From the IMG/VR virus record IMGVR_UViG_3300027899_000001, positions 1-64,000 of that record: DNA of 64,000 nucleotides, one strand, 5' to 3'. Positions within the stretch are counted from its first letter, which is position 1. Each line of letters begins with the position of its first letter. Shown here one piece after another: positions 29,775 to 62,234 of the stretch. Both the position numbers and the translations under genes were made by a program. The notes beneath the pieces are model-generated. The model searched no databases. It was given only the letters and a program-made list of their open reading frames with translations, and was not told where the DNA came from.

Positions 29775-30173
29775 ATGAGAGCAAAATTCATATATGAAAA
29801 ATTTTCAGAAGATTCAGATCCTGTTCATGATTTAGGAATTGGTATAATGCATGCTATTAAACATTTTCTTACAAAAGAATCTCGATATAAAACAGAACCA
29901 ATCATATATCCTAAAGATTATTTATGGATGTGTGCAGCTGAAGAAAAAATAGACTATATTAAAGCTTTACTTAATATGGGTTATGATGTAAATGACGATG
30001 GATCTAGAGCTCTTCGTTGTGCTATAGTTACTCAAAATGCACCATTAGTAAAATTTTTATTACAAAAAGGCGCTGGATTTGAACCCAATGATAAATGGCA
30101 TCGTGATTGGTCTTATGAAACAGCTGAACGTAATGAAGAAATTACAAGATTATTGAAAGAATATAATATATAG
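29775..30173 (+). CDS. Ankyrin-repeat protein with shared EKF-SDP-DMGIG leader
   Basis: MRAKFIYEKFSEDSDPVHDLGIG leader; ALLNMGYDVN...ALRCAI...LVKFLLQKGA ankyrin-like repeats. Confidence 0.7.
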   Translation: MRAKFIYEKFSEDSDPVHDLGIGIMHAIKHFLTKESRYKTEPIIYPKDYLWMCAAEEKIDYIKALLNMGYDVNDDGSRALRCAIVTQNAPLVKFLLQKGAGFEPNDKWHRDWSYETAERNEEITRLLKEYNI

Positions 30174-30195
30174 TATACAATTAAAATAAAATATT

Positions 30196-30852
30196 ATGAA
30201 AATTCGAGAAGAACGAGAAGATTTAAGAAAAATGTTAGATAATTCTCCTGAAAAAATTAACAAAAATGTTGCAGTTACAGGAGAAGATATACCTGAATTA
30301 CAGCCAGAACCGTTAATGAATGTCAATCTTGGCGATGTTAAAAAACAATGTGAAAAAGAAGCACGAACAATGATAAAAAATGCCATCTCTTTTATGGTAC
30401 CTATGGATATGATTAAATCTAACAAATATCTAAAAGATAAATTTAAAGTAGATGTTATGTCATTAGCAGGTATGATTTATCAACTTAGAAGTAATGAAAT
30501 TATGCAAAAGGCTCTTATGGAACAAATTAACCTTGGCCTTACACATCCAAGATATTGGGAAGTATATTCTGGGATGTCAAAAACTATTGGAGATTTGAAT
30601 AAACAATTATTACAAACAGTAGAAGCTATACGAGAAACATATAGAAATTTTAAAAATGATGTTAAAGAACAAAGAACTGAAGCACTGGGTCCCCAAATGA
30701 ATAATTCTTCAGGTATGTTAACTGCTGGAGATGGAAGTGTAGTTACAAGAGGAACTAAGGAATTAATAAATCGCGTTAAACAATTTAAAAATGATAAAAA
30801 TAACGCTCAGTATATTGATTCGGAAAAATTAATTCCAAATATCCCCATATAA
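30196..30852 (+). CDS. Helical protein, candidate terminase small subunit
   Basis: Helical/coiled-coil 218-aa ORF directly upstream of terL, separated only by an HNH gene; the assignment is positional. Confidence 0.4.
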   Translation: MKIREEREDLRKMLDNSPEKINKNVAVTGEDIPELQPEPLMNVNLGDVKKQCEKEARTMIKNAISFMVPMDMIKSNKYLKDKFKVDVMSLAGMIYQLRSNEIMQKALMEQINLGLTHPRYWEVYSGMSKTIGDLNKQLLQTVEAIRETYRNFKNDVKEQRTEALGPQMNNSSGMLTAGDGSVVTRGTKELINRVKQFKNDKNNAQYIDSEKLIPNIPI

Positions 30853-30854
30853 AA

Positions 30855-31403
30855 ATGAATCATTTAAAAATTTATAATTCAATAATTGATAATGCTAAAT
30901 TAAAAAATAGAGTTAAATTTAACAAATCTAATGCAAATTATGTTTATTATGAAAATCATCACATTATTCCGAAGTGTTTAGGCGGAAATGGTAATAAAGA
31001 AAATTTAATTTTATTAACAGCAAAAGAACATTATGTATGTCATAAATTATTAACCTATATCTATAAAGAAAATAGAAAAATTGTTAATGCATTTCATAGA
31101 ATGACTTTTGATAAAAAAGGAAAACATAATATTTCATCAAGAGATTATGCTTATGCACGAGAATTAAAATCAAATACTCCCGTTTCTGAAGAATCAAAAG
31201 AAAAAAATCGTCAAACACATTTAAAAAACCCTCTTTACGAAGAAAAGAAACAAAAACAAAAAGAAAACAATTTTAGAGAAAATAATCCAATGTATGGAAG
31301 AAAACAGTCGAAAGAAACGATAGAAAAAAGAAAAAAAACTTGCGAAGAAAGATATGGAATAAATTGTTCTTTAAATTTTAGAAAAATAAATAAAATAAAA
31401 TAA
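30855..31403 (+). CDS. HNH homing endonuclease
   Basis: YYENHHIIPKCLGGNGNKENLILLTAKEHYVCH; NPMYGRKQSKETIEK tail. Confidence 0.85.
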   Translation: MNHLKIYNSIIDNAKLKNRVKFNKSNANYVYYENHHIIPKCLGGNGNKENLILLTAKEHYVCHKLLTYIYKENRKIVNAFHRMTFDKKGKHNISSRDYAYARELKSNTPVSEESKEKNRQTHLKNPLYEEKKQKQKENNFRENNPMYGRKQSKETIEKRKKTCEERYGINCSLNFRKINKIK

Positions 31404-31406
31404 TTT

Positions 31407-33371
31407 ATGGAATCATCATCGCCTGTATGGAACAGCATGCTTATACAGCAATGTCTAGAAAAACTTAGAATGGGAATGCCTGTTAATATGGGAGCATTTC
31501 ATATGAATGATATTGAGTTAAAAGCAGATAATATATTATATCAATTAACAGCAGACGAAGTAGAAGAATTTCATAAATGTTCTGAAGATATTGTATATTT
31601 TGTTGAAACATATTGCAGATTTATGACAGATAAAGGACGTAAAACTGTTCCATTAAGAGAATATCAGAAAAAAATTCTTAGAGCATTAGCAGAAGAAGGC
31701 TATATTAAAATTCTTGATGAACTTGGACCTAAAAATAGAAATTTAATAATTATGGCTTCACGTCAAACAGGAAAAACAACTACAATATCTGCATTTTTTT
31801 CTTGGTATATGTGTTTTCATAATGATAGAAATTTAGCTATTCTTGCTAACAAACAAGAAACTGCATTTGAAATTGTAAAAAAAGTTACTGATGTATTTAA
31901 AGGATTGCCATTCTTTTTAAAACCCGGAATAACACATATTACAGGAGGAGGCATGAGACTTGATAATGGATGTCAGTTAATGTCTCAAGCAACAACAAAA
32001 ACTGCACAAATCGGTTATACGATTCACGTTCTTTATGCTGATGAATTTGCTCATATTCAACCAGGAATTGTAAATGATTTTTGGAGATCAGTTTATCCTA
32101 CTCTTGCTTCTTCTGAAATATCACAGTGTATAATAACATCGACCCCTTTTAGTGAATATGATTTATTTTATGAAATTTGGAGCAAAGCATTATTATCACA
32201 AAATTCCTTTAAAGCTTTTAGAGTTGATTATAATGAAGTGCCAGAGCATGATGATGCATGGGCAGAAAGAACTCGACGAGATTTTGGTCCAGAAAGATTT
32301 GCACAAGAATTTGAACTTTTATTTAATAGAGGCGATTCTTTATTATTGAGTGCAAGTGATTTTAATTTACTTACAAAAATAGAAACAGAATATATTTTTC
32401 ATGATTTAAATAAAACTGATTTAGATGAAAGTTTATATCGTAATCTTAAATGGCATCCATCTTTTGATCCTAATGCAGAATTTGACAAAAAAACTACAAG
32501 ATTTGTTTTAAGTATAGATACAGGAGAAGGAAAAGAAGAAGATGAAAAAAAAGATAATGATTACAATGTTTGTAATATATTTAAAGTAGAAGTAAGAAGT
32601 TTATCGCAATTAAAAAGACTTAGAAAGGATGAGTATAAGCTCAAGAATATGTTCAGACTGTCGCAAGTAGGTCTGTATAGGGATAATATAAAAGATGAAG
32701 AAAATTGCGCCAAGGTCGCTAGATCACTTATTTTTGATCAATTAGGAGAAGACTTTTGTAAAGTTTTAGTTGAAATGAATTTTAATGGAAAACATTTTCT
32801 TGATAAATTTTCAGATCATGATAAATTTGATGATAATGTTTTATTAAAAACTTATCATACAAAACCTATTGTTGGAGAAAAGCCTCCTCATAAAAAAGCA
32901 GGATTTAGAGTTGGACAAGATAAAGAATTTTTCTGCAAATTAGGAAAACAGTTAATGACAAAAAAACTTTTACTTGTTAATGAAACAGAAACAGCAAAGG
33001 AATTTAGAGGATTTGGAAAAGATAAAAGAGGAAAATACAGGGGAATAGGAACTCATGATGATATCGTAATGAGCACATTAAATATAGCCCGTTTATATGA
33101 AGAAACGCAATATGAAGAATGGTTAAATGATTTTTTTGAAGACATGCCTATTAGTAAAACTAAACAATTAATAAGTACTTTAATAGAAGAATATGTTGAA
33201 ACAAATGAAATTGAAGATAATTTATTTAAAATGATGCATGAAGAAGCTGAAAAAGAAATGACTGAAGCAAGTATTTTAAAAATGATAAATAATAACGAAG
33301 GGAATATACGATATACTCCTAGTTCTACTTTGAATAGAAGCGGATACAATTTTCCATGGAGAAAAAGTTAA
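31407..33371 (+). CDS. terL: Terminase large subunit (T4 gp17-like)
   Basis: DIVYFVETYC, LREYQ, Walker A SRQTGKTT, ILANK, Walker B LYADEFA; nuclease SIDTGEG and DDIVMS. Confidence 0.92.
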   Translation: MESSSPVWNSMLIQQCLEKLRMGMPVNMGAFHMNDIELKADNILYQLTADEVEEFHKCSEDIVYFVETYCRFMTDKGRKTVPLREYQKKILRALAEEGYIKILDELGPKNRNLIIMASRQTGKTTTISAFFSWYMCFHNDRNLAILANKQETAFEIVKKVTDVFKGLPFFLKPGITHITGGGMRLDNGCQLMSQATTKTAQIGYTIHVLYADEFAHIQPGIVNDFWRSVYPTLASSEISQCIITSTPFSEYDLFYEIWSKALLSQNSFKAFRVDYNEVPEHDDAWAERTRRDFGPERFAQEFELLFNRGDSLLLSASDFNLLTKIETEYIFHDLNKTDLDESLYRNLKWHPSFDPNAEFDKKTTRFVLSIDTGEGKEEDEKKDNDYNVCNIFKVEVRSLSQLKRLRKDEYKLKNMFRLSQVGLYRDNIKDEENCAKVARSLIFDQLGEDFCKVLVEMNFNGKHFLDKFSDHDKFDDNVLLKTYHTKPIVGEKPPHKKAGFRVGQDKEFFCKLGKQLMTKKLLLVNETETAKEFRGFGKDKRGKYRGIGTHDDIVMSTLNIARLYEETQYEEWLNDFFEDMPISKTKQLISTLIEEYVETNEIEDNLFKMMHEEAEKEMTEASILKMINNNEGNIRYTPSSTLNRSGYNFPWRKS

Positions 33372-33452
33372 TTTTATCTTATGAAAATTATGATATATAA
33401 TAAAAAAGAGCATTCTTTTCAAGAATAAATAGAATAAAAATAATAGAATAAT

Positions 33453-36642: not shown

Positions 36643-37356
36643 ATGAATCATCTAAAAATCTACTACTCTATAATTAAAAAAGCAAAATCTGAAAATAGAA
36701 GTAAAAGTTGTGATATTTATTACGAAAATCATCATATAATTCCAAAATGTTTAAGCGGTAATAATGATAAAGAAAATTTAGTTTTATTAACTTCACGAGA
36801 GCATTATATATGTCATAAATTACTAACATATATTTATCCTAAAAATAGAAAAATTGCATGTGCATATCATAAAATGACATATGGAAATAGCAACAAATAT
36901 ATTAAATCTTCAAGAGATTACGCATATGCAATAGAATTAATTAAAACTACTATAATTTCTGAAGAGACACGAATTAAAAAAAGTACTTCTCTTGGTAATA
37001 TTTTAGCTAAACAAGGTGATATTAACCCAGCTAAACGTTTAGATGTTAAACAAACTATATCAAAAAAGCTCAAAGGAAAATTTCTTGGTGAAAAAAACCC
37101 AATGGCTAAAACTTCAAGAAAACGAAATAATCTAAAAAATTTAGAAAATAATGGCATAATATTAAAGGGTGATATACATGAATATCTTCGTAAAAAAATT
37201 AAATGTGTCAATATAGAAACAAATGAAATTATTATTTTTGATGGAGTGCAAGAATTATTAAAAATACTAAAAATAAATAAACGAAAATATTATTCTCATC
37301 TAAAAAATAAAAAACCAATTCTTAACAAATTTACGTGTGAAGTATTGAATATATAA
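36643..37356 (+). CDS. HNH homing endonuclease (start moved to MNHLK)
   Basis: YYENHHIIPKCLSGNNDKENLVLLTSREHYICH; the N-terminus matches its paralogs from 36643, and the promoter motif lies just upstream. Confidence 0.85.
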   Translation: MNHLKIYYSIIKKAKSENRSKSCDIYYENHHIIPKCLSGNNDKENLVLLTSREHYICHKLLTYIYPKNRKIACAYHKMTYGNSNKYIKSSRDYAYAIELIKTTIISEETRIKKSTSLGNILAKQGDINPAKRLDVKQTISKKLKGKFLGEKNPMAKTSRKRNNLKNLENNGIILKGDIHEYLRKKIKCVNIETNEIIIFDGVQELLKILKINKRKYYSHLKNKKPILNKFTCEVLNI

Positions 37357-37373
37357 AATAAAATATATTTAGT

Positions 37374-37730
37374 ATGAAATATGTTAAAGAATATTTAAAC
37401 GAAGAATGGATTTCCACAGATACGGGAATAGATCGTTATGCAGATTCTTTTTCACAACACGGCGAAATGGAAGAGCCTTCAGATTTCAAAGAAATGGTTC
37501 CTCCATCTACTATGAAATTTACAGCTGAAGATTTTGAAGAATACATACAGGGTTTAATAGAAGAAGTAATACCGCAGTCTCCTGTATTAGCTCTTAACAT
37601 TTTTAAAGAAGTAATAAAAGAACATCCTTATTTGAAAAAAAGACCCATAGGATTTAACGCAGTTAATCCTTATGAACCAACAATTCATAAATTTTTACAA
37701 ACATTCGAAAAAGTAATAAAAGGAGTTTAA
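37374..37730 (+). CDS. Hypothetical protein with MKYVKEYLNE leader
   Basis: 118-aa ORF with its own promoter motif and terminator. Confidence 0.7.
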   Translation: MKYVKEYLNEEWISTDTGIDRYADSFSQHGEMEEPSDFKEMVPPSTMKFTAEDFEEYIQGLIEEVIPQSPVLALNIFKEVIKEHPYLKKRPIGFNAVNPYEPTIHKFLQTFEKVIKGV

Positions 37731-43528: not shown

Positions 43529-44359
43529 ATGGCAAAAATAAAAAAACTTGCAATGACCATAAATGCGTTTGACGCGTCAGAGCTTCTTGAATCATTAATA
43601 TCAGAAATACGCGATCAACTTGATTATGTTGCAGCATTTTATCAAAAAAGATCATATTGTGGAAATCCAATGGACCCTAAAGATTTTGAAGAATTGAAAC
43701 GTTTAAATTCTTTAGGATTAATTGATGAACTAATAGAATTTCCAACAAATTTTAATAAGCCTCATAGAGAACAAGAGACGGATAAAAGAAATATGGGTAT
43801 TAATATGATGAAAGAAAAAGGATTTTCTCACATATTAAATATCGATGCAGATGAATTTTATGATAAAGATCAATTTAGAGAAGCTAAAAAACAAATAGAT
43901 GAAAATGGATGGCCAATTACTTATTGGAGTTATGTAAATTATTATCGAGATTTTGAACATTATCTAGTTTATCCATTTAGACCTTTCGTTCCAGGTATAC
44001 ATTCAACGTACTTTACATATACCTTCAACGGGCCAGCTCCAGGACCCACAGACCCCACTCGGCGCATCTTAAACCCTATGAATATAGGTACATACCTCTT
44101 CCCAGACGAAGTGATTAGAATGGGGCACGGTGCATGGGTGCGTAAAGATATTAGAAAGAAATTAGAGAACTGGAGTGCTAAAGATCATTTTCCAAAATCG
44201 CTTATCGATACTGCGGTACACAGATGGGAGAATTGGAAAGAAGGTGATAATGCTATCATGTTATTCAATGTCCCTGATAACAATGTATATGTACGAAAAT
44301 TAGATGTTAAAATACATAAATTTGAAGTACCATGGTTAAAACAAACAAAAGAGGCTTAA
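43529..44359 (+). CDS. GT-A fold (family 2-like) glycosyltransferase
   Basis: N-terminal Rossmann-like strand, ETDKRN and ILNIDADEFY (DxD) motifs. Confidence 0.7.
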   Translation: MAKIKKLAMTINAFDASELLESLISEIRDQLDYVAAFYQKRSYCGNPMDPKDFEELKRLNSLGLIDELIEFPTNFNKPHREQETDKRNMGINMMKEKGFSHILNIDADEFYDKDQFREAKKQIDENGWPITYWSYVNYYRDFEHYLVYPFRPFVPGIHSTYFTYTFNGPAPGPTDPTRRILNPMNIGTYLFPDEVIRMGHGAWVRKDIRKKLENWSAKDHFPKSLIDTAVHRWENWKEGDNAIMLFNVPDNNVYVRKLDVKIHKFEVPWLKQTKEA

Positions 44360-44370
44360 TCCTCTTTTTT
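44347..44370. terminator. Bidirectional terminator at the convergence of the + and - gene blocks
   Basis: AAAAGAGG-CTTAAT-CCTCTTTT with A and T runs on either side. Confidence 0.7.
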
Positions 44371-44832
44371 CTTTAATGGAAGTTCTATTCCAAGTTCCTT
44401 ACATTTTTTATTAAATTTCCAGTCTAAACTGTGTATTGTTCTTGCACCTATATTTCCTTCCCATCTACCAGTATTTTCTATAATTTGAATATAAATCATT
44501 TTTCCTGGACCAGAAGTTTGAAAATTAAATGTATGCCCTTTTAATTCAACTGATGCAAATGTGCTTCCCATTTCAGCATTAGGATTATTTTTAAGATAAA
44601 AGGCGTATTTTCTATTAAAATAAAATGCAACACTATATCTAACTATTTTTTTAAGATTATCTAAGGTTTCTATGACTTCTGAAAAATCTAAATCATCTAC
44701 TTGCAATCCTATATATTGTTCTAGTTTTTTATGATTATCTTGCATTTCTGCATATTCAGGGTGTCCAATACCCATATCATGAATAGCATCAGATTCTTCT
44801 GTAAATTTTTCGTTTATATAACGTGCTTTCAT
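44356..44832 (-). CDS. Hypothetical protein with shared EKF-SDP-DMGIG leader
   Basis: MKARYINEKFTEESDAIHDMGIG N-terminus. Confidence 0.75.
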   Translation of the reverse strand: MKARYINEKFTEESDAIHDMGIGHPEYAEMQDNHKKLEQYIGLQVDDLDFSEVIETLDNLKKIVRYSVAFYFNRKYAFYLKNNPNAEMGSTFASVELKGHTFNFQTSGPGKMIYIQIIENTGRWEGNIGARTIHSLDWKFNKKCKELGIELPLKKKED

Positions 44833-47163: not shown

Positions 47164-49200
47164 TTAAATATCACTAACAGATGTATGTATTACCTTTCCG
47201 AATGGTGCTTCCCACTGGAAGTTATCGTATATAACCCAAATGAATTTTCTAAAATATTTAGGAACTCTTGGATTTGATGCATAACCATCAGTTAAGAAAA
47301 TACAAAGATTAATAGCATCATTGAAATTATCTCTAATCCAATCAAGTGGTTTCTGGAAGTCTGTGCCTCCACCACCTTTGATATTCTTTGGTCTCCACAC
47401 TTTAGCACCATGAGGTTTAACTGTTTGAACAGAACCTGGATCTACTCCATCATCAAAGAATATAACTGTAACTTCTTTAATTTTCTTTGCAAATATGATA
47501 TCATTCACTTCACCAATAAGTTTATCAAATGTATTTCCATGAAACATTGATCCTGAAACGTCTACAGCTACAACAACTTTCTTTATTGCATCTACTTTAG
47601 GTTTCATACCACGTTTTAGATATTCATCGCTTTTATATAAGTGTTTTTTAGCACCAATTCTAAATTGTTTTTCTGGTGATAATGCACTTCCTACGAATAG
47701 TTTTAATTGTGCTCTCCAGTCTACAGTTCCTTTAAGGAGTTTTCCTAATTTATTAATAAGAGCATCGCCTCTACCACTTCCAGCTTGTTTTAGTTTTTCA
47801 GCAGTTTTTTGAATTTCTCTTGCATTTGATTCCCATTTAGCTCTTCCAGATTCGCCAGCTTTCATTTCTTCATCATCATATCCAGAAGCTCTTGCTATTT
47901 GTTCTCCTAATTTAGGATCAATAAATCCCCCCGCTCTACCGCGATCTGCATTTTGCATTCTTCTTGAAAGACCAGCTTGTTCTTCAGTTAATCCAGATTT
48001 TTTATCTGCTATTTGCATTTCGCCCGTTTGACTAGCAATTGCTTTAGCAGTTTCTTTAGATCCACCGGGTTTACTTTCTTTTCCTTCACCTTTGTCTCCG
48101 CCTTCGCCTTCTCCTGAACCGCTACCTTTACCTGGTTTTGATTCACCCGGTTTTGGTTCTCCTTTTTTACCCTTACCTTGGCCTTCACCTTCACCGCCTT
48201 CTTCACCTTCTTCTCCTGGCTCTTGTTCATATTCACCTTGAATATCTATGCCGCCACCACCGCCACCGCCACCTTGTGATTTAGGTGGAGGAGGAAGAAT
48301 AGGTATAAGATCTTCTGCTTTATAGCTTTCATTAATAAATGGGTGCATTATATAAGCTTCATTAATAGGATCAACTTCAAATGTTCCATCAGGATTAATA
48401 CTTTTAATAATACCCTTTCCACCTGTAGCTTTAATTCTAACTTTAGTTCCTGGAGTTAATTCAATTTCACCTTTTTGTGGTGGTTGAGGAGGTCCTGGAG
48501 GTCCTGGAGGTGGAGCGGTTTTAGGTAATTTAGTAGGATCAATCTTAATTGGAGGAGGCGGTGGAGGCAATGGAGGCATATTTTTAATTATGTCATGATA
48601 AATTTGCTCCACAGGAAGATTAAGATATTTTTTATCATATAATCCTTTAATTTCATCTTTAACAAATTTTTCGTCAAAGTCATCAGTTGTATCAACAATG
48701 ATTGTATTAATTTCAAAATCTCCTGCAATATTAAATACTTCTTGATTAAATCCCGCTCCTCTTTCCATATGCATTAAAATACAATGGTAAATTTCATGAA
48801 TAAGAACAAATATCTTAGCCATCCAAGAAAGACTATCTGCGAATTCTGGATTAACAAATAATCTAACTCCATCAGTTGCCATTGTCTGAACTGCCCAAGT
48901 ATAGATAATTGGATCAAATTCATGAATAAAGGGACGATAAAGAGGAGATTGAGTTACGATTTTATATTTAGCAGCTTCCATATCCTTTTTAACTTTCTTT
49001 ACATTTATAGTTTTTCCAGTATAAGGTGAAACACATTCTTCCATATCCTCAATTCTTGGAATTTTAGCAGCTTGATCTGCTAACATCGCTCCAGTCATTT
49101 TTGGTTGTGTTGCTTCATTAATCTTTCCAGAAGGATTTAACTTTTTTAGAAAGTCCTCTAACAATGGATAAAAATTGTAATTTATTTCTTCTTTTTTCAT
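47164..49200 (-). CDS. DUF2201-like metallopeptidase plus VWA domain protein (MoxR partner)
   Basis: TMATDG, HEIYH (HExxH), Pro/Gly-rich linker, MIDAS DVSGS, GGGTDF and LTDG. Confidence 0.85.
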   Translation of the reverse strand: MKKEEINYNFYPLLEDFLKKLNPSGKINEATQPKMTGAMLADQAAKIPRIEDMEECVSPYTGKTINVKKVKKDMEAAKYKIVTQSPLYRPFIHEFDPIIYTWAVQTMATDGVRLFVNPEFADSLSWMAKIFVLIHEIYHCILMHMERGAGFNQEVFNIAGDFEINTIIVDTTDDFDEKFVKDEIKGLYDKKYLNLPVEQIYHDIIKNMPPLPPPPPPIKIDPTKLPKTAPPPGPPGPPQPPQKGEIELTPGTKVRIKATGGKGIIKSINPDGTFEVDPINEAYIMHPFINESYKAEDLIPILPPPPKSQGGGGGGGGIDIQGEYEQEPGEEGEEGGEGEGQGKGKKGEPKPGESKPGKGSGSGEGEGGDKGEGKESKPGGSKETAKAIASQTGEMQIADKKSGLTEEQAGLSRRMQNADRGRAGGFIDPKLGEQIARASGYDDEEMKAGESGRAKWESNAREIQKTAEKLKQAGSGRGDALINKLGKLLKGTVDWRAQLKLFVGSALSPEKQFRIGAKKHLYKSDEYLKRGMKPKVDAIKKVVVAVDVSGSMFHGNTFDKLIGEVNDIIFAKKIKEVTVIFFDDGVDPGSVQTVKPHGAKVWRPKNIKGGGGTDFQKPLDWIRDNFNDAINLCIFLTDGYASNPRVPKYFRKFIWVIYDNFQWEAPFGKVIHTSVSDI

Positions 49201-49209: not shown

Positions 49210-49860
49210 TTATTTTTCAATTGATATTAGCATTCCTCCGATTTTACAACCACGAGTTATTATTTCTTTTGTTAAATATTCTGATTCTGTAAAAAGTATA
49301 TTTCCTGTAACTTCTCCAGGAAAATGTTTTAGTGATTGTATAGGATTATTAAATATATGTAAATCTCCTGTCACACGTCTAGGAATATATTTAAGATCTG
49401 TTAAATTATTATCATTTATATAAATTGATCCAGTTATTATTTCTGCTATTCCTTGAAGAGTTTCTAATTGATTATGACTTGCGCCATAAGATTCTTTAAC
49501 TATTCTAGGACTAAATTTTAATGTAGTTAATTTATTATTGCTACACATAAAAGATCCTGAAACACTATAAGGAACTCCTTGTAAAGATATTAAATTATTA
49601 TTACTTATATGAAATCCCCCCATAATATGATTAAATATTATATAATCTGGAAGATTATTTAAATTTTTATGATCTAATAAAACAGATTTATATACATTTA
49701 TTAAAAATTTTTTGGTTAATTTATATTCGTCTATGTTCATAGAATCTAACCAATTCTCAATACTTTTTTTAGCGCCTATTCCCATATCGTTAACAGGATC
49801 GCCAGTTTCTGTAAAGCTCATATAATTATTTTCATATAATATTTCTTTTACCAATTTCAT
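49210..49860 (-). CDS. LRR-like/pentapeptide-type repeat protein with degenerate shared leader
   Basis: SFTETGDPVNDMGIG leader; repeats of L.SL.G.P..V.G.F.C..N. Confidence 0.7.
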   Translation of the reverse strand: MKLVKEILYENNYMSFTETGDPVNDMGIGAKKSIENWLDSMNIDEYKLTKKFLINVYKSVLLDHKNLNNLPDYIIFNHIMGGFHISNNNLISLQGVPYSVSGSFMCSNNKLTTLKFSPRIVKESYGASHNQLETLQGIAEIITGSIYINDNNLTDLKYIPRRVTGDLHIFNNPIQSLKHFPGEVTGNILFTESEYLTKEIITRGCKIGGMLISIEK

Positions 49861-50905: not shown

Positions 50906-51262
50906 TTACATATCTGAATCATTTTTTAGAGTAATATATTTCATTGAAGAAAACCATTTTCTAGTTTTTAAATAATTATAATTATTTTCATTTTTATATG
51001 CTTCTCTTTCAAAAGAAATATTCCTATATCCTTTTTTTCCATATATTATTGTTTTATAAACCCATTCTATTAAATACCATATATAAAAAGGAATTATTAA
51101 CATTTCTATTTGTTGTTTCCAGTGTATAGATTCATGAATAATCATATTTTGATGATTTAAATATTTGGATCTAAGAAAAATTCCAAAGGGTGCTAATGTT
51201 ATTCCTATAACATTTTCTTTAAGAAGAAACAAAAGAAAATTTCCCATTTTTTTAATTTTCAT
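50906..51262 (-). CDS. Small HExxH protein (putative zinc metallopeptidase-like)
   Basis: GITLAPFGIF...IHESIHWKQQ.E...ISFEREAY. Confidence 0.65.
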   Translation of the reverse strand: MKIKKMGNFLLFLLKENVIGITLAPFGIFLRSKYLNHQNMIIHESIHWKQQIEMLIIPFYIWYLIEWVYKTIIYGKKGYRNISFEREAYKNENNYNYLKTRKWFSSMKYITLKNDSDM

Positions 51263-52227
51263 AATAACGATTTTATATATTTTACAAATAAACCGTGTTC
51301 TTTTTCTCTTCTACTTTTTAATCCAGGAAATTTCTTTGATACGCTAGTAGTTTTTATACTATCAGCTGCTCCTTTATAATCTTTTTTTCTTAATTGTTGA
51401 GCAAATTGTGTTTGTCTAAATTTTGATACTCCCATATTAAATGCCATTGATACCATTGCATCAAACATACCTTGAGTTATTTTTGGCTTTATTCCTTTTT
51501 CTTGCCAATCTAATAACATCCTTTTTACTCCCTTTTCAGCTAATGATAAATCGCCTTTAAATAATTCTTCAGCTTGTTCTTTAGTAATTTTATCACCTTC
51601 TTTATAATTAGCGCTTGTTGCTGGCTCTGCGTGACCCCATCCAATAGTTATCATTCCATCTGATTTTTCTTTTATCTCGCCCGTTTTCTTATCTTTTACT
51701 TTATATCTATTTACATATGCAGTTAAATGAAGTTCTTCATGATATTTTATTAAATCTATTCCTTCTTGAGAAGTTTTTGCAGAATTAATATTTATGACCT
51801 TAATAGCTATATCTTTTTTAGTTTCACCCTTTATATCTCGTATTGCTTTTGGATTTATTAATGAAGAAGCAACATTTTTTACTTCTTTTATATTAATTTG
51901 ATTTGATTTTGAAAGTTTTTCAGCAGCTTGTTCTATTTTAATTTTTTGTGCGGGTCCAGTATTTGAAAGAACACTATTCTTGTTTATCATGTTCATTGAA
52001 AACAAGAATATTAAAATAGTAATTATATATTTTTTTGTTGTAAAATTATGTTCTTTATTGAACTGATTAATAAGTTTTTGTGCTGCAGCTTTTTTATCAG
52101 ATATCTTATTTAATAAATTAGTTATTTTAGTAAAATCCAAACTTTCGTTTAAAGATTCTTGTAATAATAAATTTAAATAATATTCATCATTTTGAATTGT
52201 ATATTCTTTATAAGAAATAAACTTCAT
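51259..52227 (-). CDS. GH24 phage lysozyme with long N-terminal extension
   Basis: TSQEGIDLIKYHE...DGMITIGWGH, FDAMVSMAFNMG and GLKSRREKE motifs. Confidence 0.88.
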   Translation of the reverse strand: MKFISYKEYTIQNDEYYLNLLLQESLNESLDFTKITNLLNKISDKKAAAQKLINQFNKEHNFTTKKYIITILIFLFSMNMINKNSVLSNTGPAQKIKIEQAAEKLSKSNQINIKEVKNVASSLINPKAIRDIKGETKKDIAIKVININSAKTSQEGIDLIKYHEELHLTAYVNRYKVKDKKTGEIKEKSDGMITIGWGHAEPATSANYKEGDKITKEQAEELFKGDLSLAEKGVKRMLLDWQEKGIKPKITQGMFDAMVSMAFNMGVSKFRQTQFAQQLRKKDYKGAADSIKTTSVSKKFPGLKSRREKEHGLFVKYIKSLL

Positions 52228-57224: not shown

Positions 57225-57225
57225 G

Positions 57226-57426: not shown

Positions 57427-57427
57427 G

Positions 57428-58060
57428 TTATTCTTCATTTTCATTTCCAAAATACGAATCCACTAAATCTGGATATTTTTTATAAAGACCATCAGCCACA
57501 TCTTTACGAGCTTTACGAAGTCTTGTTTTAACAGTTGAAAGATTCCAACCTAAATCATCTGCTATATCATTCAATTGTTTTTGATTAATTTCTCTTTCAA
57601 TCATTACAGTTTTATATGGTTCTTCTAATTGATTTATTGCAGAAATTGATGCATCAAATAATTGTTGTGTTAATTCTTCTCCGCTTGGACCCATACATTC
57701 AGTATTCATATTAAATACTGGATTATAATTTTGAAGTAATTTAGAATGATTACTCATATATCTATCATAAGATAGATTTCTACTGCCATTTCTTATAATA
57801 CCGAGCGCTTCATTTTTTGCAATTGCATATACCCATGTAGAGAAATTATATTGAATTTTATATTGTTCAATTTTTTCCCAAATAGCTATAAAAGTTTGTG
57901 CTACTACTTCTTTAGCTAAATCTCTATCTCTAACGTATTTGTATGCGAATGATGAAAGGCCTGGTTTTAAACGATTAATTAAGATTTCAAAATTTTTGTT
58001 ATTTTTTTCTTCTATAAAATTTAATGCAATAGTTTGGATACTAGGATTTTTCTTACTCAT
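57428..58060 (-). CDS. Sigma-70 family (ECF-like) RNA polymerase sigma factor
   Basis: Region 2: LAKEVVAQTFIAIWEKIEQY...FSTWVYAIAKNEAL. Region 4: LNDIADDLGWNLSTVKTRLRKAR. Confidence 0.88.
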   Translation of the reverse strand: MSKKNPSIQTIALNFIEEKNNKNFEILINRLKPGLSSFAYKYVRDRDLAKEVVAQTFIAIWEKIEQYKIQYNFSTWVYAIAKNEALGIIRNGSRNLSYDRYMSNHSKLLQNYNPVFNMNTECMGPSGEELTQQLFDASISAINQLEEPYKTVMIEREINQKQLNDIADDLGWNLSTVKTRLRKARKDVADGLYKKYPDLVDSYFGNENEE

Positions 58061-58112
58061 ACAATAATTTTAATTTAGTTTATGTGTTTATGTATTATGT
58101 TATCATAGAAAA

Positions 58113-58415
58113 TTAATCTTCTATAATTTGTTCTACGAAATTATTGATATTTTTCATCATAGCTTCTACTCTTACAAATGGAAATTGTCCAATAGCATTA
58201 ACAATTTGAGTTAAAGTTTGATGATCCATTTTTTCAACATCAATTGCTTGAATAAGTCCAGCGATTTCATTAAAAGGACGATCTCCTACTGCTTGTAAAA
58301 GAGCCTTTTTAAAATCGGGTTTAATTCTATATGTTGGAACATAAGCATTTGTTTCAACTTTTTGAGTTGCATCTACAGTAGGAGTAGCTGATACGGTTGG
58401 TTTTTCATTTGCCAT
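58113..58415 (-). CDS. Hypothetical protein
   Basis: 100-aa ORF with an internal duplication (RPFNEI / QFPFVRV). Confidence 0.65.
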   Translation of the reverse strand: MANEKPTVSATPTVDATQKVETNAYVPTYRIKPDFKKALLQAVGDRPFNEIAGLIQAIDVEKMDHQTLTQIVNAIGQFPFVRVEAMMKNINNFVEQIIED

Positions 58416-58542
58416 AATAATCTTTATTTTAGTTTTAAGTTTATATTTATTTTATTTTTATATATAAAAAATGTTAAAAAGTTTTGATTTGATATAATAC
58501 AATATAATACAAATGTGTGTTAATGATTTTTAATTTTGTTAA

Positions 58543-58821
58543 TTATTTGTTATTTTTAACTATATAGCCACTATTTTTTATATGTGATAGCCAATCTTCA
58601 ACATCTTTTTTAATTATCATACTAGAATCAGTAACTTCTCCAGATTTTGTTTTATAATACTTCACATGAACAAACCATTCATCATATTTATCTTCTATAA
58701 ATAATACTGATAAAGAAGAGTGCGGTTTACTTAACAGATATAACTGTTTATTATTTGAAAAATCTTTTATGTTTTCTGTAAGTTTTGTTTTTACTTTTGG
58801 TATAAGTTTTTTATAAGCCAT
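58543..58821 (-). CDS. Hypothetical protein
   Basis: 92-aa ORF within the operon. Confidence 0.6.
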   Translation of the reverse strand: MAYKKLIPKVKTKLTENIKDFSNNKQLYLLSKPHSSLSVLFIEDKYDEWFVHVKYYKTKSGEVTDSSMIIKKDVEDWLSHIKNSGYIVKNNK

Positions 58822-58822
58822 A

Positions 58823-59530
58823 TTATCGTATTAATAAAGTTTTATCTAATAAATATTTATATTCATCAAAAAGTTCAGTTGGTGTATACGTTTTTAAGTT
58901 TTCAATATTAGATTCTTCAGCTGATATACGTCGAGCACAATCAACAACTTCAAAATTATCATATGTTTTCAATGCAAGATAATTATCTCTAACTCTACTT
59001 TGAAATTCTATATCTGCTTCATGAATATCTTTTAAATGAGATTCATTTTCACTTCTATGCTGTAATCTTTCTTTGATAATATCAATAGGAACATCAAAAA
59101 AGATATTTAAATCTGGATATGGTAATTCTAAAAATCCAAATTCAAATTCATCAATCCATTCTCTTATTATACTAGATTGTATACTAGTATTATATTTAGC
59201 TCCTTGAAAAGCCATATTACAAAATACATATCTATCTAATAAAAGAACATCATTTTCTGCTAATTGTTTATTAAGAGTGGGAAGATATAAAAATCTATCC
59301 ATTGCATACATGTTTGCTATAAATACAGGATCTACTTTCTTTACATCACCATATTCTCCTCTTAAATAAGATGATATAACAATACTCGCTTCATTATCTC
59401 CATATTTTGGAAAATGAACATATTCAAATTTAAGATTTTTATCTGTGAGATATTGTTTTATTAATTCTACTTGTGTACTCTTGCCTGAAGCATCAAGACC
59501 TGATACGGCGATAAGTGTTGCGTTATACAT
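58823..59530 (-). CDS. tmk: Thymidylate kinase
   Basis: GLDASGKSTQ P-loop, HFPKY, LLDRYVFCN and PYPDLNIFFDV motifs. Confidence 0.92.
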   Translation of the reverse strand: MYNATLIAVSGLDASGKSTQVELIKQYLTDKNLKFEYVHFPKYGDNEASIVISSYLRGEYGDVKKVDPVFIANMYAMDRFLYLPTLNKQLAENDVLLLDRYVFCNMAFQGAKYNTSIQSSIIREWIDEFEFGFLELPYPDLNIFFDVPIDIIKERLQHRSENESHLKDIHEADIEFQSRVRDNYLALKTYDNFEVVDCARRISAEESNIENLKTYTPTELFDEYKYLLDKTLLIR

Positions 59531-59547
59531 AAAAAAAGTATTAAAGA

Positions 59548-59832
59548 TTATGGTTTATAAAAAATGTTTTCTATATATTGAAAAATAAAAACAACGGAAA
59601 GGCCTATGCACAATAGGCCCCAAATGTTCCAATCCGTTTTAAATATAAGTTTTAATGTGTATCCAAAAATAAAAGATTTAAATGGTATAATAAATAATAG
59701 GATAAATGAAGTAAAAAGATCTGCTAATGTATTAGTAAACTGTGTTTTAGTAGACTCAGTTTCTATAGATTTTTCACCTTTATTTTTAAATTCATTTAAT
59801 TTATTACTTAATGAATTATTACTCAGCGTCAT
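59548..59832 (-). CDS. Small membrane protein
   Basis: Two hydrophobic segments in the C-terminal half. Confidence 0.6.
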   Translation of the reverse strand: MTLSNNSLSNKLNEFKNKGEKSIETESTKTQFTNTLADLFTSFILLFIIPFKSFIFGYTLKLIFKTDWNIWGLLCIGLSVVFIFQYIENIFYKP

Positions 59833-60464
59833 TATTTTTTTGTTTTAAGATCTAATTTTTTTACTTTTGTATCGCCAGGAGCAGCTTTCTTTTCTTCTTT
59901 TTCTTCTTTTTCTTCAGATTCACCTGCTTCGTGTTCTTCTTTAGCTTCTTTTTCTTTAGATTCACCAGCTTCATGTTTTTCATGAGCTTTATCTTCTGGA
60001 GCTTTTCCTTTATCTTTTATATCACCGGGTTTGCCATCAGTTTTCGCTGCAGGACCTTTTTCACCTTCTCCTTTTGAAAAATTGGGAGATTCTTTCTTAG
60101 GATCGAGATTTCCTTTTTTCTCTGGTTCTTTTTCACCAGGAGCTCCATCTTCTTTTTCTCCAGGTTTTCCGCCAGCAGTTTTAACTTCACCAAACATTCC
60201 GGGTTTAAAGTCTTTAACTGAGTCAAGATCTGTTTGAAGATCGTATCCAGGTTCAAATTTAGAACCGCCCATATTCATTTCTACTTTAACTTCGACTTTT
60301 CCCTTTTGAAATTCTTTTTTAAGCCAATCATAAGATTTCTTATTTGTATCTGGAATAACTATTCCATCAGCATCAGTTAAGCCTTCGCCACCACTCATCA
60401 TTTGAGTAGATTCTTCGTAAAGTTTTTCTAAATAGTCGTTGATGTTAAAATTACCTGCTTTCAT
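59832..60464 (-). CDS. Highly charged E/K-rich protein, possibly prohead core/internal
   Basis: LEKLYEE N-terminal motif, low-complexity EK tail and its own promoter motif. Confidence 0.6.
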   Translation of the reverse strand: MKAGNFNINDYLEKLYEESTQMMSGGEGLTDADGIVIPDTNKKSYDWLKKEFQKGKVEVKVEMNMGGSKFEPGYDLQTDLDSVKDFKPGMFGEVKTAGGKPGEKEDGAPGEKEPEKKGNLDPKKESPNFSKGEGEKGPAAKTDGKPGDIKDKGKAPEDKAHEKHEAGESKEKEAKEEHEAGESEEKEEKEEKKAAPGDTKVKKLDLKTKK

Positions 60465-60496
60465 ATAATTAGTTTTATTTTATATATCTTATATAT

Positions 60497-60913
60497 TTAT
60501 CGTCCAAAAAGATTTTCTCCTGGTTTTGGCATTCTTTTTAATACCCACTTCTTTGTAATTGGATTTTTTACACAATATTTTGGTAATAAACCTGCTTGTC
60601 TATATGTTCCATAGAGTTGATCAGTCCAATAGCCTCTTTGTTGTCTTTGTTCTCCAATTTGACGTTGATATCCGTTGCTCCAATCGTATTTTGGTTCTTT
60701 TTTATAAAAGTCAGCTTTTGAATGTCCATTTAAAGTTACAAAAATATATTTCTGTATATCTGTAAAGCTTGCGCCTTCTTCTCTGTATTTTGCAATAAAC
60801 TGTAATAGTTTAAACGCTTTTGTTTTAACCATTTTTTCTCCATATCCTATATTCATATCTCTTATAGGATCTGATTCTTCTGAGAACTTTTCAAATACTC
60901 TTCTAGCCTTCAT
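60497..60913 (-). CDS. Hypothetical protein with shared leader and wHTH-like domain
   Basis: MKARRVFEKFSEESDPIRDMNIG; domain shared with the C-terminus of 61404-62234. Confidence 0.75.
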   Translation of the reverse strand: MKARRVFEKFSEESDPIRDMNIGYGEKMVKTKAFKLLQFIAKYREEGASFTDIQKYIFVTLNGHSKADFYKKEPKYDWSNGYQRQIGEQRQQRGYWTDQLYGTYRQAGLLPKYCVKNPITKKWVLKRMPKPGENLFGR

Positions 60914-60991
60914 TTAATAAATCCTGCATTTTTTTAGTTGTATATAAATAACTTTCGTATTTTTTTATAGATCTATCAAAACTCGATGCTG

Positions 60992-61396
60992 TTATTTTTT
61001 TATTTTAAAAATTTCTTTTATAACGCCTTTCATATCATATATATTTTTAATATAATAATATTTTCCTTCTGTGTTATAAATCCACCCCCATCTAGCGCCT
61101 TTTAATATAGCATTTCCCGCTTTATTATTCATAGCAAAATCTAATTGATTTGTTTCACTGTAAAGTAATTTAGCAGCTGGATGACTTCCATTTTCACAAA
61201 CAATAGTCATAACATCGTCTGTATTTATATCATAATAATGACCTACTTCATCATAATAAATATCCTTAAATTTAAAATATTCAGAAAAATCTTCAATAAA
61301 TTTTTCTAATATCTGTATGGGCTTTATTCCTATACCCATATCTCTTATAGGATCTGATTCTTCTGAAAACACTTCGTATATGTATTTAGATTTCAT
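60992..61396 (-). CDS. Hypothetical protein with shared leader
   Basis: MKSKYIYEVFSEESDPIRDMGIG N-terminus. Confidence 0.75.
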   Translation of the reverse strand: MKSKYIYEVFSEESDPIRDMGIGIKPIQILEKFIEDFSEYFKFKDIYYDEVGHYYDINTDDVMTIVCENGSHPAAKLLYSETNQLDFAMNNKAGNAILKGARWGWIYNTEGKYYYIKNIYDMKGVIKEIFKIKK

Positions 61397-61403
61397 TCAT
61401 TCT

Positions 61404-62234
61404 TTAATATTTTATTCCATCATCAAAATAAGGTCTATATTGATCTAAATAATTTTGTCCACTAGTATCAAGAATATAATTACCCGCTGAGTTTTTTCTT
61501 GTTTTGCCATTAATTAATCCATATGCAAATGCGCCAGAATAATATCCTCTATTAAGATTTTTATCAAATTTTCCCCTTCCGCTAGACATTTCATATGCAA
61601 ATTTTATTATATCTGTGTATCTTCTGCCTTCAAGCCCAGCTTCTTCAATAAATTCTAATATTTTCCAGATTTTATATCCTCTTGAAAAGGTTTTATCTCC
61701 CCATGATTTTTTTCCTGTAAGATGTGTTTTTCTTTGTTCTATAGGGCCCAACTCTTTATATCTTTTTCTACTTTCTTTTTTCTGTTCATAATCCCAATCA
61801 TGTATAGTTACTTTACCACCAACTTTGCAAATATTTCTTAATTTTTCTTCTGATGGTCTTATACCATTTTTAATAAAAACTAAATCACCCGTTACTTCTT
61901 TAGGAAAACCATGTAGAGATTTGAAGTTTTTTGAATTTGTAATAGAAAAATCTCCATTTATTTTATTAAATTCAATGAATTCAGGAAAATTATCAAATAG
62001 AAAAAATTGTATAGAACAATTATCAACATTTAATGTTCCATCTAAATTTATTGTTACATAATTCATTACGTCGAAATCATCAAAACCACTACGATCATTG
62101 GGTTTAAAATATTTATGTAAACCTGAGTTAATTTGATTTAGCCATTTTTTAATTTTTTGAGCTAAACCAATTCCCATATCCCATACAGGATCTGAATTTT
62201 CTACAAATTTTTCAAATACATATTGAGCTTTCAT
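61404..62234 (-). CDS. Shared-leader protein with LRR-like and wHTH-like domains
   Basis: MKAQYVFEKFVENSDPVWDMGIG; middle similar to 49210-49860, end similar to 60497-60913. Confidence 0.75.
   Translation of the reverse strand: MKAQYVFEKFVENSDPVWDMGIGLAQKIKKWLNQINSGLHKYFKPNDRSGFDDFDVMNYVTINLDGTLNVDNCSIQFFLFDNFPEFIEFNKINGDFSITNSKNFKSLHGFPKEVTGDLVFIKNGIRPSEEKLRNICKVGGKVTIHDWDYEQKKESRKRYKELGPIEQRKTHLTGKKSWGDKTFSRGYKIWKILEFIEEAGLEGRRYTDIIKFAYEMSSGRGKFDKNLNRGYYSGAFAYGLINGKTRKNSAGNYILDTSGQNYLDQYRPYFDDGIKY

Follow-up and report, generated by a model that had tools for sequence, protein, structure and literature searches.

Here we describe a short peptide that an uncultured huge tailed phage (IMG/VR record IMGVR_UViG_3300027899_000001) places in front of about 88 protein modules, most of them very different from one another. 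The peptide occurs both at gene starts and between the modules of long bead-like proteins. It resembles a capsid-loading and protease-cutting tag of the T4 kind, on a far larger scale than is known, although this reading is tentative and the packaging and cleavage of the tagged proteins are inferred from sequence alone. The region first examined (the window) consists of the first 64,000 nucleotides of the 405,016 bp genome, which is that of a complete huge myophage. A preliminary description of the window reported a leader of about 23 residues on six otherwise unrelated proteins and interpreted these as effectors packaged in the head.

Results

Copies of the tag in the window

The observation of six leaders is confirmed, as all six copies begin open reading frames (ORFs) at the reported positions. 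A profile built from the five strong leaders scores each of them at 63 to 64 bits (domain E about 1e-18) in a six-frame scan of the window. The copy at 49860 scores 20 bits (E 2e-5) and nothing else in the window passes, so this is not chance. The features of the window are as follows.

29775..30173 (+), module gene of 132 aa: 8-residue leader MRAKFIYE, acidic core and ankyrin payload (tag 29775-29843; 63.6 bits). The payload is 41% identical to a bead of the multi-module protein P0034.
44356..44832 (-), module gene of 158 aa: 8-residue leader MKARYINE, core with SDA in place of SDP, and a payload of unknown fold with no Pfam hit (tag 44764-44832; 63.9 bits).
49210..49860 (-), module gene of 216 aa: intact 10-residue leader MKLVKEILYE, 5-residue insert, core FTETGDPVNDMGIG and LRR-like repeat payload (tag 49774-49860; 20.3 bits). 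The payload matches other LRR-like modules at E down to 6e-21.
60497..60913 (-), module gene of 138 aa: 8-residue leader MKARRVFE, core (MNIG variant) and a payload related to the C-terminal part of the 62234 protein (tag 60845-60913; 62.8 bits). There is a weak Pfam B-block_TFIIIC hit (E 0.018), and the gene product is 48% identical to a bead of P0033.
60992..61396 (-), module gene of 134 aa: 8-residue leader MKSKYIYE, core and payload of unknown fold (tag 61328-61396; 63.2 bits). It is 40% identical to a bead of P0104, and no standalone homologue was found.
61404..62234 (-), module gene of 276 aa at the head of the three-gene array 62234>61396>60913: 8-residue leader MKAQYVFE, core, helix, predicted LRR-like beta-solenoid and C-terminal helical part (tag 62166-62234; 63.3 bits). 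It is 39% identical over its full length to the last part of P0029.
62250..62265 (-), late-type promoter box (GAATATATAAATAAA) about 26 nt upstream of the 62234 gene.
37374..37730 (+), gene of 118 aa in the tail/structural cluster: 10-residue leader MKYVKEYLNE alone, without the acidic core, preceded by the same promoter box about 25 nt upstream.

Several points of the preliminary description require correction. The 49860 copy was called degenerate, but its 10-residue leader is intact and is separated from the core by the 5-residue insert. The payloads are not all unrelated. The 49860 protein and the N-terminal part of the 62234 protein share an LRR-like payload, and the 60913 payload matches the C-terminal part of the 62234 protein (E 1e-5). 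The payloads of 44832 and 61396 are unrelated to each other. The gene at 37374-37730 was missed.

The ankyrin assignment of the 29775 payload is confirmed by Pfam (Ank_2, E 5e-7, 30.6 bits against a curated cut-off of 27.3), and other modules reach Ank_2 at 45.6 bits. The LRR and wHTH labels rest on weak evidence. For the 49860 and 62234 payloads there is no Pfam LRR hit. AlphaFold2 gives a confident beta-solenoid, and the top Foldseek hits are LRR domains, but the best of these has an E of only 0.3. The wHTH label depends on the Pfam hit at E 0.018.

Distribution in the genome and in metagenomes

The six genes are a small sample of the family. Genome-wide, a profile finds 88 copies in about 62 to 64 genes, or 10.7% of the proteome. 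Of the 64 open frames that carry a copy, 18 carry 2 to 6 copies, so many copies are internal and are spaced about 90 to 146 aa apart. The tag is therefore not only an N-terminal leader. The copies always sit at module boundaries and lie in tandem arrays.

A profile search of metagenomes finds 1,676 cluster representatives, with up to 10 copies per protein, and every context examined is phage-like. None of these protein clusters has a name. There is no Pfam model of the tag, no deposited phage has it, and no real match exists in prokaryote genomes. A tblastn search of module proteins against 50,697 phage records finds no T4-like phage, and thus no homology to the T4 internal proteins IPI/IPII/IPIII or Alt. 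Only LRR-like payload matches appear, in two Vibrio phages and one uncultured phage. The tag is also absent from a distant 436-kb relative that keeps the same capsid and protease type, so it is not needed for head assembly as such.

The payloads are extremely diverse, with at least 117 similarity groups among 580 modules. Standalone payloads of the window recur as beads in the multi-module proteins of other phages, and modules move between standalone and fused states in different phages. Payloads are mildly basic, with a median pI of 8.6 against 6.8 for other proteins (p 0.03).

Structure of the tag

The tag has two units. The first is a pre-Glu peptide of exactly 10 or 8 residues ending in [ILV]-[NYF]-E. 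At gene starts it reads MK[ILV]V[KR]E[HY][IL]NE (10 residues) or M[KR]Ax[YFR][IV]xE (8 residues), and at internal junctions it reads phi-K-E-S-phi-N-E. In this genome 29 genes have exactly 10 and 16 genes exactly 8 residues before the invariant Glu. The second unit is the acidic core KFxEESDPIxD[ML]GIG.

The units are separable. Unit 1 occurs alone on the 37374 gene, on the gene g80951 and on the scaffold-like gene g157439, and in the protein P0045 a bare KESINE precedes a ligase-like domain. However, loose N-termini with I8-x-E10 outside the family are not enriched over shuffles, and [ILV]-x-E is a short and common pattern.

The Glu is invariant in 86 of 86 copies in this genome. In outside motifs it is Glu in 495 of 498 and never Asp, while neighboring acidic positions exchange E, D and Q freely. 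The residue two positions before it is I, L or V in 96%. Other residues of the tag (F, the D of SDP and the final G) are as invariant as the Glu, so this strictness is not specific to the putative P1 position. Eight or more positions are invariant or above 90% across the 86 copies and hundreds of distant proteins. Synonymous codons vary freely at conserved residues (third-position identity is 0.65 at identical residues and Ser uses six codons), so the conservation is at the protein level.

AlphaFold2 places both N-terminal and internal copies in low-confidence linkers (pLDDT 42 to 60) between confidently folded, unrelated payloads (pLDDT 90 to 98). In the model of the 62234 protein, residues 1 to 23 are coil at pLDDT 55 to 60 and the solenoid at residues 60 to 145 is above 90.

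Head genes, the shared triplet and the promoter class

The phage is a T4-type myophage with TerL and tail sheath. It encodes a Peptidase_S77 prohead protease of the gp21 type (61 bits) fused to a scaffold-like tail, and a gp23-type major capsid protein (MCP; Gp23 family at 101.9 bits) that matches solved T4 gp23 at E 2e-5.

The triplet [ILV]NE is most enriched genome-wide in the protease-scaffold gene (10 sites, P 1e-6). Asn as the middle residue of [ILV]xE occurs in 10 of 29 triplets in this gene against a 7.8% background (p 4e-5), in 5 of 13 in g157439 and in 3 of 7 in the MCP. The site in the MCP N-terminus, HFHA-LNE-AAMGG, is conserved in about 20 relatives and as INE in a group with about 30% MCP identity; its variants are Y and T. 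Asn and Tyr are also the two commonest middle residues in module junctions. However, when aligned to gp23, the MCP site lies about 21 residues further upstream than Glu65/Ala66 of T4.

A promoter box similar to the T4 late box precedes 10 of 17 module-array heads against 36 of 164 other gapped genes (p 0.002). It also precedes the protease-scaffold gene and a tail-fibre gene. The same promoter class drives many genes that do not look like virion genes, and its late timing is inferred from the likeness to the T4 box. Module genes are mostly not next to head genes, and none lies within 10 kb of the MCP in the relatives examined.

Discussion

A possible capsid-targeting and processing signal

The explanation that we favor, tentatively, is that the peptide is a bipartite cargo tag of a clade of huge T4-related phages. 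Unit 1 would be a propeptide similar to the T4 capsid targeting sequence (CTS), ending in a site for the gp21-type prohead protease, and unit 2 would stay on the payload after cutting. In this view the module proteins are made late, together with virion proteins, and the exposed tag brings them into the assembling prohead core. The protease would cut after the invariant Glu, which would remove the N-terminal peptide and dice multi-module proteins into single modules. The modules (ankyrin, LRR-like and many unknown folds) would stay in the head and enter the host with the DNA. In favor of this view are the head machinery, the exact spacing before the Glu, the strict Glu with I/L/V two residues before, the shared triplet, the predicted disorder of the tag, the independence of the modules, the separable units, the promoter class shared with virion genes and the mildly basic payloads. 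Against it are the shortness of [ILV]-x-E and the lack of enrichment of loose I8-x-E10 N-termini, the equal strictness of other tag residues, the distance of module genes from head genes, the wide use of the promoter class and the shifted position of the MCP site.

The analysis establishes the anatomy, scale and distribution of the tag, its disorder in models, the presence of the protease, the shared triplet and the shared promoter class. Targeting, cleavage, retention and ejection are inferred. The role of unit 2, perhaps docking to the scaffold or the shell interior, or a signal on the mature protein, is the weakest step.

The interpretation offered in the preliminary description is partly supported. 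The tag is portable across different folds and is not part of one shared folded domain, the phage has the protease, and the Glu lies in a triplet that fits the gp21 rule. The suggestion that the part after the cut is a second signal fits the two-unit anatomy. The anti-defence role proposed for the payloads is pure inference.

The T4 CTS, which the prohead protease gp21 removes from the internal proteins IPI/IPII/IPIII and Alt, is the 10-mer MKTYQEFIAE (PMC8442874), with processing determinants at residues 8 and 10 and cutting after L/I-X-E (PMC9026906). In T4, Asp in place of the Glu blocks processing. The 10-mer described here shares M1, K2, E6, I8 and E10, although this is 5 of 10 residues and two of these (M1 and K2) are nearly trivial. 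There is precedent in the internal proteins of T-even phages, which are diverse payloads that share only a CTS (PMC3012670), and in giant phage heads, which hold paralogue families of up to 20 members (PMC5694885). Here, as in T4, the payloads are diverse and fast-evolving. The system differs from that of T4 in several respects. There are about 88 modules rather than a handful, and the tag also occurs internally as the junction of multi-module proteins. The most conserved part of the tag lies after the proposed cut and has no counterpart in the T4 CTS. In addition, 62 genes and about 10.7% of the proteome is a very large cargo set for one capsid.

If the tag is a capsid-loading and processing signal, this phage clade delivers an unusually large and modular set of proteins with its DNA, and one tenth of the proteome would be injected cargo. 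That would change how the unexplained coding capacity of huge phages is read. The tag would be a simple sequence handle for finding ejected effectors in metagenomes, and could also serve as a compact tag for loading foreign proteins into large capsids. The internal copies would be the first case of cargo polyproteins diced by a prohead protease.

Alternative explanations

A less likely alternative is that the tag is a short linear docking motif for a common partner unrelated to the capsid, either a host machine or a phage hub protein. Each module would be brought to that partner, and multi-module proteins would be multivalent scaffolds that stay intact. The tag is disordered in the models yet very strongly conserved, which is typical of linear motifs, and its best conserved residues (F, SDP and D[ML]GIG) lie outside the putative cleavage triplet. 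The large size of the family, the ankyrin and LRR-like payloads, which are classic protein-binding modules, and the absence of the tag from the 436-kb relative are also consistent with this view. However, it does not explain the exact spacing of 8 or 10 residues from Met to the Glu, the strict Glu with I/L/V two residues before, the triplet shared with the protease-scaffold gene and the MCP, unit 1 occurring alone, or the promoter class shared with virion genes, and no partner has been identified. Even if the capsid reading is wrong, a 20-residue disordered peptide kept nearly invariant on hundreds of unrelated domains points to one important, as yet unidentified, partner.

It is unlikely that the tag is mainly a neutral or structural inter-domain joint that marks cassette boundaries and has no signalling role of its own, retained because it allows modules to be shuffled, duplicated, fused and split by recombination. 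The movement of modules between standalone and fused states, the tandem arrays, the diversity of the payloads and the position of the tag at module boundaries would fit. However, the free synonymous sites show that selection acts on the peptide and not on DNA homology, and the conservation is far more than a passive linker needs.

It is more doubtful still that the tag is a self-processing element, at or near which the chain would break without the prohead protease, for example at the Asp-Pro bond, releasing modules from polyproteins in the cytoplasm. The invariant Asp-Pro in an exposed linker and the functional independence of the modules would fit, and the bead-on-a-string architecture suits a polyprotein. 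However, no catalytic fold is predicted around the tag and no similarity to known autoproteolytic domains appears in Pfam. Asp-Pro cleavage normally needs acid conditions, N-terminal copies would gain nothing from self-cleavage, and neither the [ILV]-x-E rule nor the shared triplet is explained.

That the tag is simply the N-terminal part of one shared folded domain is already largely refuted: some payload classes share a helix right after GIG (consensus IKxWL), which links the ankyrin and LRR-like classes in BLAST clustering, and there are two large paralogue groups of 26 and 11 members, but the payloads include ankyrin repeats, a beta-solenoid, a small beta-rich domain and many unrelated sequences, the tag is modelled as coil with the lowest confidence in both models although it is the most conserved segment, and a pTM of 0.50 against a mean pLDDT of 85 indicates independent domains.

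Relationship to other cargo systems

The core of the tag ends in D-[LM]-G-I-G, which matches DLGI or LGIG of the encapsulin family 1 cargo targeting peptides (GGDLGIRK, GSLGIGSLR and GSLxIGSLK; PMC10960027). These are also short disordered peptides that load unrelated cargo into a shell of the HK97 fold. Only 4 to 5 residues are shared, which could be chance, and the S-L-K/R that follows in encapsulin peptides is absent here. Encapsulin peptides are C-terminal, whereas the tag is N-terminal or internal, and the context is a tailed phage genome with no encapsulin operon. A speculative and improbable extension is that the clade has a two-signal cargo system that loads dozens of different effector domains into the capsid. 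A T4-like N-terminal or junction peptide would bring proteins into the prohead and be cut by the prohead protease, which would also dice multi-module polyproteins into single cargo units inside the head, and the retained acidic D[LM]GIG peptide would dock each unit on the inner face of the HK97-fold shell until ejection. This would be the first phage cargo polyprotein system and a mechanistic link between phage internal proteins and encapsulin cargo loading.

The long ORFs also resemble viral polyproteins that are processed by a virus protease, as they consist of independent domains separated by a conserved exposed junction containing a candidate site for the phage's own protease, and the same domains are encoded as separate genes in relatives. 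To our knowledge, processing of cargo polyproteins by a prohead protease has not been described for tailed phages, and here it is inferred.

Giant phages such as phiKZ, 201phi2-1 and SPN3US have large genomes with expanded paralogue families of head proteins of up to 20 members (PMC5694885), multiply cleaved ejection proteins, a gp21-related protease that cuts after Glu in a short motif, and propeptides with redundant cleavage sites (PMC5694885, PMC9026906). However, their motifs differ (A/S/G-X-E) and their families are true paralogues of one fold, not one tag on many folds. Among the 20 module proteins scanned, none matches a Pfam family of those proteins (for example pfam12699 of phiKZ/SPN3US). 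By its terminase this phage is T4/Lak-related and not phiKZ-like.

The leader peptide in the window and its genomic context

The six ORFs named in the preliminary description all begin with the peptide reported there, and the observation is therefore confirmed. A profile built from the five strong copies scores each of them at 63-64 bits in a six-frame scan of the window. The same profile scores the copy at 49860 at 20 bits, and nothing else in the window passes.

The window is the first 64 kb of a single 405,016-bp contig with 28.8% G+C, which IMG/VR classes as a complete virus with direct terminal repeats. It is a tailed phage with a T4-type large terminase and a tail sheath. The nearest deposited relatives by terminase are the Lak megaphages, at only about 35% identity. 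Megablast and tblastn searches against deposited phages found no near relative and no phage bearing the motif.

Scale and anatomy of the tag

Genome-wide, the profile finds 88 copies in 64 open frames, which by our own gene calls correspond to 62 genes and 10.7% of all residues. Eighteen frames hold 2-6 copies that are about 90-146 residues apart, and one 754-aa protein has six copies. The peptide is therefore not only an N-terminal leader, as it had been described, but precedes every module of bead-on-a-string proteins.

The 18-residue conserved core is [ILV]-[NYF]-E-K-F-x-E-[ED]-S-D-P-[IV]-x-D-[ML]-G-I-G. The Glu, the Phe, the Asp of SDP and the last Gly are invariant in 86 copies. Synonymous codons vary freely, so selection is on the peptide. 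At gene starts the Met lies exactly 10 residues before the putative cut-side Glu in 29 genes (MK[ILV]V[KR]E[HY][IL]NE) and exactly 8 residues before it in 16 genes (M[KR]Ax[YFR][IV]xE). All five strong window copies are of the 8-residue type. Internal copies keep the pattern phi-K-E-S-phi-N-E before the core.

The tag has two separable units, referred to here as unit 1 (the leader) and unit 2 (the acidic core). The window gene at 49860, which had been described as carrying a degenerate form, has a perfect 10-mer followed by a 5-residue insert and then the core. In P0045, a protein from outside this genome, a bare KESINE precedes a ligase-like domain. In addition, the 10-mer occurs without the core on gene 80951 and on the following genes:

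Window 37374-37730 (+): small gene in the tail/structural cluster that starts with the 10-residue leader MKYVKEYLNE but lacks the acidic core; a candidate CTS-only virion protein
Genome 157439-157984 (-): g157439, a 181-aa helical, acidic, scaffold-like protein with a bare leader-like start and five [ILV]NE sites, lying among module arrays; it may be a core/scaffold protein of the gp67/gp68 kind

Bare leaders are nevertheless rare, because loose I8-x-E10 or I6-x-E8 N-termini outside the family are not enriched over shuffles.

P0045 (1,339 aa, on a JGI contig of 26.9 kb) has four tagged modules inserted between an N-terminal nucleotidyltransferase-like region and a C-terminal KxDG ligase-like domain (Pfam DUF6267). 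The gene lies next to gp32 and a helicase, and the genome of the window has a partial homologue at 167659-169563.

Payload diversity

With the tag removed, the 88 payloads form two larger paralogue groups (26 and 11 members) and many singletons. The classes are ankyrin (supported by Pfam), a short LRR-like repeat class, a third class of unknown fold, and many others. Pfam found nothing for the larger non-repeat payloads. Adding modules cut from outside proteins gives 580 payloads in at least 117 similarity groups, 84 of them singletons.

The six payloads in the window had been presented as otherwise unrelated, which holds only in part. The gene at 49860 and the first part of the 62234 protein share the LRR-like payload, and the 60913 payload resembles the C-terminal part of the 62234 protein. 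The payloads of 44832 and 61396 are unrelated to each other, and a homologue search with the 61396 protein retrieved only the protein itself. Standalone window payloads reappear as internal beads of multi-module proteins in other phages at 39-48% identity. Modules therefore move freely between separate genes and fusions. The LRR-like payload, but not the tag, also matches deposited phages. Residues 648-736 of the frame at 9587-11848 (locus L001) match hypothetical proteins of two Vibrio alginolyticus phages (54% over 50 aa) and a 735-kb uncultured phage, LR756501.

Predicted structure

Two AlphaFold2 models were made with paralogue alignments. In the 62234 protein, residues 1-23 are coil at pLDDT 55-60, the next helix is at about 80, and the predicted beta-solenoid (residues 60-145) is above 90. 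In the two-module protein encoded next to the protease gene, both payload domains reach pLDDT 90-98, while the N-terminal tag (47-54) and the internal tag (42-54) are the least confident parts. The pTM is only 0.50 against a mean pLDDT of 85. In these models the tag therefore behaves as an exposed, flexible linker. This largely excludes the tag being part of one shared folded domain, the possibility that had been named beforehand as one that would refute the leader interpretation.

A Foldseek search of the 62234 model against the PDB found nothing significant (best E 0.3), so "LRR-like" remains a description and not a family assignment. A search of the Atlas with residues 1-40 gave no usable feature hit, and the structural matches were uninformative for so short a stretch. 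Complex prediction of the protease domain with a 40-residue leader gave a score of 0.00 and counts neither for nor against binding.

Distribution of the family

A 42-position profile searched against 1.84 billion representative proteins finds 1,676 with E at most 0.001 and 764 with E at most 1e-10, with up to 10 copies per protein. Those that were looked up are unnamed metagenomic proteins. Loci recovered from IMG/VR lie on many viral contigs, and one contig shows T4-like neighbours such as gp32. No Pfam model covers the tag. Scans of 185,579 prokaryotic species genomes with two DNA patterns gave zero hits with one and a single chance hit, in Spirulina subsalsa, with the other. Searches of the literature for the motif strings found only unrelated GIGYF papers.

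A close relative carries the tag, but a 95%-complete 436-kb phage with about 30% MCP identity does not. The family is therefore a lineage-specific expansion. The relative contig G002 proved to be a fragment of the same phage and is not independent evidence.

Head machinery and candidate protease sites

The phage encodes a gp21-type prohead protease (Peptidase_S77, 61 bits) and a gp23-type capsid protein, both outside the window:

Genome 306658-309003 (-): prohead protease, whose domain takes up the first ~215 residues, fused to a roughly 570-residue scaffold-like tail with ten [ILV]NE sites
Genome 304803-306575 (-): the adjacent MCP, which begins MKQ-LNE and has a second LNE at residues 40-42, conserved in relatives

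According to the literature, gp21 cuts after L/I-X-E, and the T4 CTS is the first 10 residues of the internal proteins (MKTYQEFIAE), with processing determinants at residues 8 and 10. Asp at residue 10 blocks processing, and T-even internal proteins share only the CTS. The 10-mer described here shares M1, K2, E6, I8 and E10 with the T4 CTS. In 498 outside motifs the Glu is never Asp, although the two nearby acidic positions exchange E, D and Q freely. The residue two positions before the Glu is I/L/V in 96%.

The triplet [ILV]-N-E is more enriched in the protease-scaffold gene than in any other gene (10 sites, Poisson P about 1e-6). Asn is over-represented as the middle residue there (10 of 29 against a 7.8% background, p 4e-5), in g157439 (5 of 13) and in the MCP (3 of 7). 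The MCP N-terminus carries HFHA-LNE-AAMGG, which is conserved in about 20 relatives and appears as INE in the distant group; its variants are Y and T. N and Y are also the two commonest middle residues in the module tags. Aligned to solved T4 gp23, this site lies N-terminal of the first conserved helix, about 21 residues further upstream than the T4 cut, a position that is compatible but not exact. None of the MCP neighbourhoods examined in relatives holds module genes.

A promoter class shared with virion genes

A promoter-like box, ATATATAAA(A)TAAA (also written GAATATATAAA(A)TAAA), extends the T4 late box TATAAATA. It occurs 116 times in the genome, and 64 genes have a copy within 70 nt upstream of their start, peaking at 15-30 nt and often just after a terminator hairpin. 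Copies in the window include:

Window 62250-62265 (-): promoter-like box preceding the 62234 array
Window 37345-37360 (+): promoter-like box about 25 nt upstream of the bare-leader gene 37374

The box also precedes the protease-scaffold gene, a collagen-like tail fibre gene and g157439. Exact TATAAATA showed no enrichment for module genes (4/62 against 23/414). However, when the longer box was restricted to genes with an upstream gap of at least 40 nt, it was found to precede 10 of 17 module-array heads against 36 of 164 other genes (odds ratio 5.1, p 0.002). In total, 38 of the 62 module genes lie behind such a box. Payloads are also mildly more basic than other proteins.

Interpretation

The preliminary description proposed a capsid-targeting leader on head-packaged effectors, and this interpretation is supported in part; the reading that we favour is an extension of it. 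In this view the tag is a bipartite cargo signal. Unit 1 would work like the T4 CTS and end in a prohead-protease site, while internal copies would make multi-module proteins into polyproteins that the protease would dice. Unit 2 would be a second signal that stays on the mature module. We hold this reading only tentatively because, whereas the anatomy, number and distribution of the tag are observed in the sequences, every functional step, including targeting to the head, cleavage and the role of unit 2, is inferred. The main objections are that the strongest conservation lies after the putative cut, the cargo set would be very large, and the triplet is short. The chief rival, which we consider less likely, is a docking motif for some other common partner. 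It explains the conservation of unit 2 but not the fixed Met-to-Glu spacing, the Glu-never-Asp rule, the shared triplet or the shared promoter class. A passive shuffling joint is unlikely, being contradicted by free synonymous sites together with near-invariant residues. Self-cleavage and a shared fold have little support.

A possible parallel for unit 2 is found in the encapsulin family 1 targeting peptides (GGDLGIRK, GSLGIGSLR, GSLxIGSLK), which bind the inner face of an HK97-fold shell (PMC10960027). Unit 2 ends in D-[LM]-G-I-G. This is a resemblance of 4-5 residues in a parallel functional setting, and the position in the protein and the operon context do not fit the encapsulin family. Binding of unit 2 to a shell would be inferred from this resemblance alone, and it is offered only as a testable idea.

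CTS-type tags on diverse internal proteins are known in T-even phages, and large head paralogue families are known in giant phages. What is new here is the bipartite form of the tag, its use at internal junctions, the number of modules per genome and the size of the unnamed family. The polyprotein-cargo and encapsulin-like readings would be more novel still, and neither is ruled out by the evidence.

Other features of the genome

A phage-encoded permuted tmRNA lies directly upstream of the 62234 module gene. Rfam tmRNA_permuted scores 64.5 bits against a gathering score of 47, and ARAGORN predicts the tag peptide GENSYALQMAA. A dispersed set of genes, many of about 300-340 aa, have Cys-x2-Cys near the N-terminus (for example MKSNIKCQICNEEF and MEKIRCLICGKEVT), and all carry the promoter-like box described here. 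These may be another expanded paralogue family or homing-endonuclease-like genes. The first 4 kb of the genome has 38.5% G+C, against about 29% elsewhere. The locations of these and other features are:

Window 62335-62516 (-), ARAGORN span 62244-62556: permuted tmRNA
Genome 91888, 108266, 110134, 112497, 115254, 267947, 326680, 329459, 333979, 355961 and 360256 (gene starts): genes with Cys-x2-Cys near the N-terminus
Window 1-4000: region of raised G+C
Genome 213301-218556 (-): 1,751-aa collagen-like tail fibre protein with very strong PHROG tail-fibre hits
Genome 304273-304710 (-): 145-aa collagen-like protein next to the MCP gene
Window 47164-49200 (-): 678-aa protein with HNH endonuclease PHROG hits, flanking the 49860 module gene
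Window 51259-52227 (-): endolysin, likewise flanking the 49860 module gene
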